Shown: positions 20,344-54,484 of the stretch, in pieces
Layout of the letters: each line of letters begins with the position of its first letter
How positions within the stretch are numbered: position 1 is the first letter of the stretch
From: Glycera tridactyla
Taxonomy: Eukaryota
Length of the DNA: 63,671 bases
Assembly: GCA_965644265.1 (NCBI GenBank)
Contig: OZ286473.1
Location: forward strand, 84,258,001 to 84,321,671
Direction: 5' to 3'
The notes under the pieces: model-generated
What the model saw: only the letters and a program-made list of their open reading frames with translations
What the model was told of the DNA's origin: nothing
Databases searched by the model: none
Program-made: the position numbers and the translations under genes

Positions 20344-20520
20344 TTAGCCGAGAATATAGGCAAGCCAGTAGATGATATTGAATGTCAGAAAGGCTAGCGG
20401 GAAGAGTTTACGGGAGAGTTTATCGACGTAGCGACCCCGGTGACGGCCCGCGGGCTCCTGGATGCCTAACATGGTAGGCGTTCTCCGTAACTCTCTCACC
20501 GGATGGGATACCACTGGCAT
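20344..20520 (-). CDS. Cys-loop chloride channel terminal exon B (distal intracellular loop + M4 + TAA)
   Basis: gtgtgtttcag|ATG, phase 0; MPVVSHPVRELRRTPTMLGIQEPAGRHRGRYVDKLSRKLFPLAFLTFNIIYWLAYILG*; D..SR..FP..F..FN..YW is the Cys-loop M4 signature. Confidence 0.93.
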   Translation of the reverse strand: MPVVSHPVRELRRTPTMLGIQEPAGRHRGRYVDKLSRKLFPLAFLTFNIIYWLAYILG

Positions 20521-21092
20521 CTGAAACACACATCAAACTACTATAACTATCTGATAAAACCTATACAATTTCTGCTATAGCCTTTTTGACAAAATAAACA
20601 TCGAGACTTCTATAGCATTATAAATATGTTTGTTGGCCACCATAGCGCAAGCTGAAATAAACATCAAGACCTGAGAGCATCAACTGAAAACTATATGATG
20701 ACCCCGTGAGCTTGAATGGGCGTTAAAATTACTATAGAATCATCTCGAAGAAGACATCATCAACGATACTATGGCCTGACTTGGGACAGACATCATTAAG
20801 GAATAAACGAAACAAATCAAATTCTGTGTGGTTTTCAGTGGGAGCCGAAATGGACATGGTGACACATATAAGCGCATGTGGAAATATGCACCAGGTCCGT
20901 TACCGCTTCAGTTGATAATGACACCAAGAGCCCCTTAGCAACAGGTGATGTCATGAATTACGTCATACACAATGAGCGCTATTGGATAATACATACACAA
21001 TGACAATTATCTCCTCATTGGAAGCAGATGGCACGGTGGTTATAGTATGAAGACTATAAGACCTCAACCGAAACATGTATCACGAACAGCAG

Positions 21093-21175
<83 letters not shown>
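21093..21175. repeat. (CAT)n microsatellite
   Basis: Pure trinucleotide run. Confidence 0.97.
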
Positions 21176-51800: not shown

Positions 51801-54278
51801 TTTATGTCGGTGTACTAGACCAATATATGATGATCTAAGCATTCACACACTTGTTGGGTGCCATTATGGTTTTCGGGTCGTGAAGATGTGCAGTATTGCA
51901 AACAGTTTATTGTGAATTATGTCAGTATTGCATGAAAGCTCCTATGTGCTCAAAGATAGGTGCAAATGTACGGAAGCCAAAATAGCGAAATTCTCAAAGA
52001 GATGTTCTACAGGCTGCACTCAACTTTGAAAAAGCTTGTATTCTAGGAGCAAGAATTTAACCCATATCAAATACTGCCCTGGGTCGATTCTCAATGTGTG
52101 ATTGTGCTTACACTTCCGGAAAACATATAAGTACATGTATAATGCAAATTTGCATACAGACTATGATAGTGAATTTGGCCTTTCAGTGAAAATAATGGAA
52201 CGCTATGACTTCGTCCCACTTCCTCGAATATTACTTGAGAAGAATATATATCAGTTCCTGCTGTTATCGGCATCTGGACACTAGTTCACGCAGATCTTGC
52301 CACAGATGTTAATAAAATGAAATAAATCATATATTGTGGGGAAATATTCTCATAACGAGTTCATATAGCTGAGGTCAATGAACAAGAATTGGCACTGATC
52401 AGAAAACGTCTGAACTCACATGTGAATCTTGTTCAAAATAATGAGCGCCTGATCGCATAGCTCAATCCCCACCCATATAACGTTTTTCATAGCTTATTAG
52501 AGACACATACTTTTCAGGTCTGTTCAAAGTTCAAATTTTGTGGTCGAGTATATGATATGAGATTTCTGCGAGCTTGCATCATCCACTGCTATTAATGATA
52601 AAATGGATAATGATCATCATAATGATACCAAAATCAAAAGATACAATAGTAATCATACAATGACTGTTAAATCATGGATGAGCACGATTTGAATATGTAT
52701 GAAAGCACAAATAATCAATATGAAATGATACCATCAATGGCACTATGACTTCAACCATTTAATGGCCAGCGGATAGCTTTGAAATACATTGAGCAAACAG
52801 TCCATTCACGGGGTAGGTTTTGCTTTTTAAATGTTCAACCTCAGCTAGATGCACTTGTAGACAAATCAGATTAGGTAGCATTTCATGCCACCAACATACA
52901 CACACGGAAGGAGAAAGAAATGTTGAAATGCACATGGTTGGTGATAGAAGAGAGTTGTAAGATGAATGGACATGGTCATCATCTTGTTAAAGTACTATGC
53001 ACAAAATCAGATCATGCAACCAGCCATGCCCATGGCATGGGCGTCTTAATATGAGACATGAAACAAAAAGCTCCTTCATGCTCTGAAAAAAACCTGCTTT
53101 CATTCACACTTTCATGCTTAAATGCAAACATAACATCAGTGCACCTCATATAATATACATAAATTGCCTCTTAAATCTATCATCAGCAACTTGATCATGA
53201 CCACAATGATTTAATTGAGCATGACTTGCATCCCATTGTCACTCATCGACATGAGTCCTGAACTAATCAAATAGCATAATTCGACAAAAGAAAATATGAG
53301 CAGGATGCACTGTCCCAAAGTGGGTTCTATCTTAGATTAGCAAAATCTAGTGATCCATTTGACAGCCTTGATATCTACTCATAATTATATTTTTCGATTT
53401 TGTCCCATCAAGTCTACTCGAGTAATATAAGATGGAGCAAGACATTGTTGGTTAAACATGGTTGTCTGATATTTGATCATGTCATTTGGTGGTCTTTACC
53501 TTAACTGACTACCTGCTAGCATAGGTGACTTACGAGCACATACCCAACCATTGTCCAGAGAAATGATTGACATGGTGTTGGATCGATGGCTTTCCGGATC
53601 CATCTACATTAACCATCAAATAAGTACATATCTGATTCGCATGAGGTTGCATGGTATGAATCACCCCCGAGGATATATTTGTGTCACTTTTTTGCAAGAC
53701 AACCTGGGACTGAATTGAATAACAATCTCCCATGTCATCTTCATCACGCTTTAATTTTCAGTGTACTCATTCGGCATTATGAAGGCTAGTAGTATATAAT
53801 CTATTGGAAACACTACCTGTGATTATTATGATTGAATCGTATGCATGATTCAAAACATTGCCTGATCGATTAATATATCTTTATCTAATTTAGTCATCCA
53901 TGTAAAAAATCATATATTACAGTTACTCTCATATAGAAAATTTCTTTCCAAGTGAGAGACTAATTGAGGAATACTTTTTCAAGATCATACAACCCCCCCC
54001 CCCCCAAGGTGTGCTATTCACAGTAATACATGATGAGATTTTACCCTTTTTTCTTCACCTCTCAATGAGCTCAGCTGTCTAGTGAGGATACGTGGTGTGA
54101 CACAGGATCATCTCCAAATGATAGTCTGATTCAGGCATTTTTCTATAAGATCATACAACATCCCATGGGGTGCTATTCACAGTAATATATGATGAGATTT
54201 TGCCCCTTTTTCTTCACTTTTGAATGAAATTAATTGCCTAGTGAAAACATATGGTGTGACACAGGGCGTTGTACTTAC

Positions 54279-54484
54279 AGACTGTCTTGAGCCGGTGCTC
54301 TGCGTGGTCATGGTGAGGACGGTGAGCAGTCCTATGGTGACCCGTGCAGGGATGGCATCCACCGATATCCAGAAGGCTACCCAGGAGAGGATGACGATCA
54401 GCACACTCGGCACGTACAGCTGGATCATGTAAAAACCTATGTCTCGTTTTAAGATGAAGTCCACTTTTAAACATGGATATGAAC
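54279..54484 (-). CDS. Cys-loop chloride channel exon: end of loop C, M1, M2 pore (206 nt)
   Basis: ttttggcag|GT ... TCT|gtaagt; (G)SYPCLKVDFILKRDIGFYMIQLYVPSVLIVILSWVAFWISVDAIPARVTIGLLTVLTMTTQSTGSRQS; PAR motif marks anion selectivity; start phase 1 matches the upstream exon, end phase 0. Confidence 0.97.

Follow-up and report, generated by a model that had tools for sequence, protein, structure and literature searches.

In the unc-49 gene for GABA (gamma-aminobutyric acid) receptor subunits of C. elegans and Haemonchus, splicing joins a common N-terminus to one of three C-terminal copies arranged in tandem (Bamber et al. 1999, summarized in PMC8841521), and the nematode gene avr-14 (gbr-2) gives rise through alternative splicing to variants alpha3A and alpha3B of GluCl, a chloride channel gated by glutamate, which share their N-terminal domain but differ in their C-terminal regions, in the channel and intracellular domains (PMC8841521). 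Splicing also places short inserts in the loop between membrane helices M3 and M4, namely a 15-residue cassette in the vertebrate glycine receptor (GlyR) alpha3 subunit and that of variant 3 of the insect channel pHCl (PMC4891346, PMC2064938), and mutually exclusive tandem exons are known from insects at exon 3 of GluCl and at exons 3 and 8 of the nicotinic acetylcholine receptor (nAChR) alpha6 subunit (PMC2064938, PMC13512814, PMC6393475). Here we describe a related arrangement in a 63,671-nucleotide stretch of the genome of the annelid Glycera tridactyla (assembly GCA_965644265.1, contig OZ286473.1, forward-strand positions 84,258,001 to 84,321,671; hereafter the window, whose own numbering is used below). 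On its minus strand the window contains the last two thirds, toward the 3' end, of what is, by its sequence, a glycine-receptor-like anion-selective Cys-loop channel gene, in which a single exon for M1 and M2 is followed by two tandem pairs of terminal exons, cassettes A and B, each encoding M3, an intracellular loop and M4.

As in unc-49, shared 5' exons precede tandem 3' modules that each end in a stop codon, and the products would be distinct subunits of an anion-selective Cys-loop receptor. The unc-49 modules contain part of the ligand-binding domain together with all four membrane helices, and the pore differs among isoforms; the module of the Glycera gene starts after M2 instead, leaving ligand site and pore lining common, and whereas unc-49 has been proven by cDNA and function, the present case is a proposal from sequence. 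It likewise departs from avr-14 in that only M3, loop and M4 differ: unlike modules of the unc-49/avr-14 type, those described here do not include the pore-forming M1-M2 segment, which is encoded by one exon, and begin at the next residue. avr-14, the precedent cited by the initial annotation of this stretch, is thus an apt one, with unc-49 closer still. The GlyR alpha3 and pHCl variants resemble the Glycera gene in that splicing alters the M3-M4 loop of an anion-selective subunit, but their inserts lie inside the loop, with M3 and M4 constant and the last exon shared. The insect pairs, in turn, are internal single exons, whereas the M3-M4 unit is terminal, spans two exons and calls for alternative formation of the 3' end. 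A limited full-text search of the literature for M3/M4 alternatives in Cys-loop receptors returned only extracellular exons, alpha6 exon 8 and loop inserts, and no M3-loop-M4 swap, in line with the initial annotation, to which no swap confined to M3-M4 was known.

Eight receptor exons lie in the window, the 5' exons of the gene being beyond position 63671. In order, they are:

63280-63198, minus strand: Cys-loop exon copy a, 83 nt, of ancestral type, flanked by CAG and GTAAGT (tblastn; PF02931, E = 4e-7)
60070-59988, minus strand: Cys-loop exon copy b, 83 nt, of derived type (tblastn; hidden Markov model (HMM), E = 3e-11; PF02931, E = 3e-5)
55812-55681, minus strand: loop-C-region exon, covering the strands between Cys-loop and M1, 132 nt (tblastn; family HMM, E = 2e-17)
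54484-54279, minus strand: shared exon of 206 nt for M1 and M2 (pore), carrying the PAR motif, with the donor TCT/GTAAGT after a complete codon
36802-36620, minus strand: M3A exon, with a CAG acceptor, M3, the start of the loop with PPPAP, and the GC donor CCG/GCAAGT
35424-35242, minus strand: M4A terminal exon, with the end of the loop, M4 and TGA
23916-23695 or 23916-23617, minus strand: M3B exon, with a CAG acceptor, M3 and a Gln/Glu-rich loop
20520-20344, minus strand: M4B terminal exon, with the end of the loop, M4 and TAA

The solved structures nearest to the M1-M2 exon are those of GlyR alpha2, alpha3 and alpha1 (E = 5e-26 to about 1e-25), and the exon encodes the anion-selectivity motif, Pro-Ala-Arg at the cytoplasmic end of M2, followed by an M2 of GlyR type. 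In Pfam terms it corresponds to positions 1-47 of PF02932, and both M3A and M3B begin at position 48, so that each M3 copy resumes exactly where the single pore exon ends; M4A and M4B both reach the final position (233/233), completing the four helices M1 to M4. Every junction downstream of M2 is in phase 0 and each AG acceptor follows a pyrimidine tract, and the donor at 54279, separated from M3A by an intron of 17.5 kb, can consequently be joined in frame to either module through the acceptors at 36802 and 23916. Exon boundaries and Pfam matches thereby bear out the architecture first proposed, one pore exon followed by two M3-M4 terminal pairs on the minus strand in phase 0; of the exons upstream that had been described as single, the loop-C and M1-M2 exons are so, but the Cys-loop exon is present as two 83-nt copies. 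Directly after the shared M1-M2 donor, the intron contains a direct repeat with a unit of about 170 nt (53679-54278, minus strand).

The positions initially given for the exon ends hold, with two corrections: the M3A donor is GC rather than GT, and M3B has two possible donors. The former (36614-36619, minus strand) is of the GC-AG type and, being the sole in-frame donor of M3A, constitutes a potentially weak site beside an alternative choice, where the orthologs have CAG followed by GT. The two donors of M3B, after 23695 (GTAAAT) and after 23617 (GTATGT), are both in frame and in phase 0, and the 26 in-frame codons between them (23617-23695) look like the beginning of relatives' M4 exon, after which the EEET..Q end of the M3 exon is repeated, which suggests that this segment is a small internal rearrangement. 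Arrays of tri- and hexanucleotides occupy part of the M3B-M4B intron (22995-23519), and the A-B spacer includes a minisatellite of 18 copies of a 59-nt unit at 96% identity (32719-33780). A junction from M3A to M4B would also be in frame, both being in phase 0, so that a cassette need not be an obligate pair.

Realignment of the two cassettes reproduced the counts of the initial annotation, with 34/36 identical residues in the M3 region, 30/34 in the M4 region and unalignable loops. Within the M3 helix itself, A and B differ at one residue, Ser in A and Leu in B, which aligns to residue 288 of GlyR alpha1 (8dn2_D residues 274-311 against query positions 1-38). The position equivalent to A288 of GlyR alpha1 is one that we take to be a transmembrane modulator site for alcohols, anesthetics and ivermectin. 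The intracellular loop of A is short and carries PPPAP, whereas that of B is longer, Gln/Glu-rich and without PPPAP; the same motif is present in GlyR alpha1, where a polyproline-II (PPII)/SH3-type role has been proposed for it (PMC4891346). In M4, two positions differ inside the helix and a few more before it, and M4A shares 72-82% of its residues with the M4 exons found in relatives.

The age of the duplication and the selection acting on it were assessed over 77 gap-free codons (40 in M3, 37 in the pre-M4 and M4 region) by the Nei-Gojobori method. Among 231 nucleotides 51 differ, distributed over codon positions 1/2/3 as 8/4/39 (binomial p = 3.5e-10 for the third-position excess), and the proportions of differing synonymous (pS) and nonsynonymous (pN) sites are 0.71 and 0.066; for M3 alone, pN is 0.060 and pS 0.58. 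When the 51 differences were placed randomly, they caused a mean of 33 residue changes, compared with the 10 observed, a number of 10 or fewer being reached in 0 of 20,000 trials, and 87% of the trials introduced a stop codon. B is intact across 158 codons, including both exons, both acceptors and the stop, and comparison of the introns and flanks of A and B revealed no similarity beyond low-complexity matches. The near-saturation of pS, the low pN and the lack of intron similarity together argue for an old duplication with strong constraint on B. By this codon evidence both cassettes are under long-term purifying selection, under which B has been translated for nearly all its history; the old, selectively maintained duplication initially deduced from codon differences is thus upheld by substitution rates and random placement alike. 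Near-saturated synonymous sites and unalignable loops also rule out a haplotype-duplicate artifact, as well as gene conversion between A and B.

Exons that might have escaped notice were sought by tblastn (word size 2) with four full-length annelid homologs as queries, and by a family HMM built from 25 homologs and run with --max on all six-frame fragments of the 63.7-kb window. Both approaches recovered only the eight exons (HMM E at most 3e-11), everything else scoring E = 0.06 or worse; the only marginal match, of E = 0.06 at 55385-55648, which adjoins the loop-C exon, lies on the plus strand and was set aside as being on the wrong strand. No extracellular-domain or M1-M2 exon was detected by either method in the 11.3-kb spacer between stop A and M3B, confirming what the initial annotation had reported for this interval, nor any further receptor exon in the 17.5-kb M2-M3A intron or in the 20 kb downstream. 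Within the assembled window, these blanks rule out upstream exons belonging to B alone. The next gene downstream, on the same strand and unrelated to the receptor, is an alpha-1,3-fucosyltransferase-like open reading frame of 413 residues, which marks the end of the receptor locus:

7478-8719, minus strand: GT10 fucosyltransferase, intronless single exon (PF00852, E = 8e-55; PF17039, E = 5e-29)

Several runs of N interrupt the window, among them:

25428-25577, unstranded: assembly gap within the spacer from A to B, at 1.5 kb upstream from M3B, dividing the contig of B from that of A
43768-43915 and 50173-50307, unstranded: assembly gaps (N runs) in the M2-to-M3A intron
55874-56018, unstranded: assembly gap 61 nt from the loop-C acceptor

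None of the N runs overlaps an exon, so that the reading frame across gaps is not an issue and contig continuity is. The gap lengths in the window are all unequal (135, 145, 148, 150, 195, 223 and 826 N) and for this reason look like read-pair estimates rather than placeholders.

The direction of change between the cassettes was established with five orthologs (Ridgeia protein P0022, loci L002, L004 and L005, and Logan transcript P0002). At all nine polarizable residue differences A has the outgroup state and B the derived one. In addition, B keeps a C-terminal motif that is specific to the orthologs and missing from the paralogs, and A and B have a derived Arg in common; since the C-terminus is of ortholog type and the derived Arg is common to both, B is a copy of this gene's own tail, diverged and faster-evolving. 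The synonymous divergence between A and B (0.71) is slightly below the between-species values (0.75-1.0, all of them saturated), which fits an origin of the duplication within this lineage.

Comparison with relatives, a check to which the initial annotation had pointed, found a single A-like cassette in four out of four, as opposed to the two of Glycera: in Ridgeia (L001), where 9 kb downstream were read, up to a convergent gene; in an annelid contig from ENA (L004; 8 kb downstream read); in a relative with a compact genome (L005/L006; 5 kb downstream read); and in a short JGI contig (L002). The two-cassette arrangement accordingly appears lineage-specific. The position of the M2-M3 intron varies, lying inside M2 in Ridgeia and after the tenth residue of the M3 exon in L005, with no such intron in L002 and L004; in the Glycera gene it falls exactly between M2 and M3, as a result of which M3 belongs to the swappable unit. 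A candidate B-type isoform of another species is Logan transcript P0002: like B it has Leu at the A288-equivalent residue and HGRPH in its loop, but its M4 is A-like, and no sister isoform of it was present in the protein collection searched.

Beside the ortholog in Ridgeia piscesae (L001), a paralog carries a tandem pair of terminal exons for M4, both intact, at 39839-39997 and 40310-40474 on the minus strand; they lie 330 nt apart and each have an acceptor and a stop, the annotated protein using the distal one. This paralog belongs to the same family and shares with the Glycera gene the duplication of M4 terminal exons, but any swap there would be confined to M4, since M1 to M3 are fused in one exon before it, whereas the M2-M3 intron of the Glycera gene would let M3 and the whole loop join the swapped unit. 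In Owenia, the annotation includes isoforms that differ in the loop-C exon. Introns of the orthologs of two annelids (L001, 23222-24857; L004, 2758-3890 and about 6600-9500) contain long tandem arrays beside an exon, whose unit repeats the last or first 15-20 codons of that exon and which look like minisatellites seeded by exon-boundary sequence. Together, the Ridgeia and Owenia cases suggest that tandem exon duplication is a recurrent route of diversification of this receptor family in annelids, and such recurrence raises the prior for an explanation of cassette B by splicing.

A second duplication of this kind involves the Cys-loop exon of the Glycera gene, the two copies of which lie 3.1 kb apart, are of equal length, have identical splice signals and both encode C-x13-C. 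They differ at pS 0.73 and pN 0.18 (5/3/16 differences at codon positions 1/2/3) and are therefore similar in age to the A-B duplication (pS 0.73 versus 0.71); Ridgeia and L004 have one copy each. As 83 is not a multiple of 3, inclusion of both copies or of neither would break the frame, the usual signature of mutual exclusion, and copies a and b are probably a mutually exclusive pair. As in the insect GluCl and nAChR pairs, tandem exon duplication would here yield isoforms, the Cys-loop pair being of this classical kind.

For the two cassettes we favor, as moderately likely, a set of alternative 3'-terminal exon pairs in the manner of unc-49 and avr-14, limited to M3, loop and M4. A single pore exon followed by two complete terminal pairs of compatible phase favors alternative terminal splicing, and the duplicated Cys-loop exon of the same gene, the tandem M4 exons of the Ridgeia paralog and the documented tandem C-terminal modules of unc-49 and avr-14 count in the same direction. 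We infer that B is spliced to the shared exons, with functional consequences that would follow from this scheme: the 3' end of one gene would have been partly duplicated in tandem long ago, and its transcripts would have the exons of the extracellular domain and the one M1-M2 exon in common, after which the donor at 54279 would be joined to one of two acceptors. Use of the proximal acceptor (36802) would give M3A, the short loop and M4A, while that of the distal one (23916) would skip cassette A and its 3' end and give M3B, the longer Gln/Glu-rich loop and M4B. The choice would be settled by competition of the proximal terminal exons and their polyadenylation with read-through and splicing to the distal pair. 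Ligand site and pore lining would be identical in the products, which would differ at the A288-equivalent residue, in the whole intracellular loop and at two M4 positions.

A number of observations weigh against this explanation. B evolves faster than A, having acquired 9-10 derived residues against none, and with one A-like cassette in each of the four relatives read, the architecture is without cross-species conservation. Moreover, the gap at 25428-25577 puts A and B on separate contigs, B being placed by scaffolding. Searches for transcripts came back blank: the exact M2-M3B junction pattern is absent from metagenome contigs, as is the control M2-M3A junction, which makes this search uninformative; equally uninformative, queries with the M3B region, the close homolog P0002 and the M4B exon against a collection of 5.8 billion proteins yielded nothing from this species. 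Neither stop codon has a canonical AATAAA nearby, the signal being absent over 5.6 kb past stop A (35242-29593) and 3.9 kb past stop B (20344-16471); one ATTAAA, the only nearby variant, occurs 2.9 kb past stop A, and the 3.9 kb past stop B have none, so that the poly(A) signals, fewer than base composition predicts, are uninformative. Lastly, no RNA pairing of the docking/selector type was found between the intron of the shared donor and the regions upstream of both M3 acceptors, 27/100 and 54/100 shuffles being as good by what is a crude method.

Some of these points recur in the explanations that compete with alternative terminal splicing. Partial gene duplicates are common, and B might be the surviving tail of a once-complete tandem paralog, or an unused partial duplicate, left as a young relic, outside any functional mRNA, by recent loss of its 5' exons. 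The 9-10 derived residue changes in B, with none in A, the odd interior of M3B with its two donors and repeated EEET..Q segment and the lone cassette of relatives would agree with this; yet near-saturated synonymous sites at a pN of 0.066 imply that B was translated under selection nearly throughout, and its exons, acceptors and stop have remained intact over 158 codons. Loss of the upstream exons would, moreover, need to have happened very recently and with its limit falling precisely within the M2-M3 intron, and the HMM detected no decayed extracellular-domain or M1-M2 fragments in the spacer, so that we regard a relic as unlikely. An error of assembly, by which B's contig, reaching to 25427, stands in the wrong place or the gap far exceeds its 150 N, would make B part of a separate, complete paralog. 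It draws on the gap that separates B from everything upstream, the length of which is only estimated, and on the abundance of GlyR-like paralogs in annelids. We nevertheless consider it improbable, since all gap lengths are unequal, like read-pair estimates, B has the ortholog-specific C-terminus and not that of a paralog, and its contig continues downstream to a gene of another kind, also on the minus strand, without further receptor exons; the 206-nt M1-M2 exon and the extracellular-domain exons are also too large for about 150 nt.

Use of B might, finally, be partial, with M3A spliced to M4A or M4B as alternative M4 terminal exons and M3B included rarely or never. The donor of M3A is in phase 0, as is the acceptor of M4B; this donor, a weak GC site, could be joined to either acceptor, and alternative terminal exons for M4 only are seen in Ridgeia; but M3B is as constrained as M4B (M3 pN 0.060, pS 0.58), which is unexpected for an unused exon, and has a good acceptor and in-frame donors, for which reasons we deem such partial use very unlikely.

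More broadly, this gene for a channel subunit of inhibitory type may be built of interchangeable blocks: there is about an even chance that an exclusive Cys-loop pair, combined with the M3-loop-M4 pairs, the two M3B donors and possibly an M3A-M4B junction, yields about 6-8 subunits. Under such a scheme these would share the binding site and the pore lining, and would differ in the gating-coupling loop, the modulator-site residue, the lipid-facing helices and the entire intracellular domain.

In summary, splicing of cassette B to the shared exons would amount to a natural version of the chimera experiment that receptor physiologists perform by hand: ligand site and pore lining stay constant, and M3, intracellular domain and M4, on which modulator sensitivity, lipid interaction, trafficking, clustering and desensitization depend, are exchanged. 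If this is true, the principle of unc-49 and avr-14 reaches from nematodes to annelids, with its break point moved to just after the pore, and the arrangement suggests that the inhibitory receptor repertoire of annelids grows by exon duplication within genes besides gene duplication, a growth that gene counts miss.

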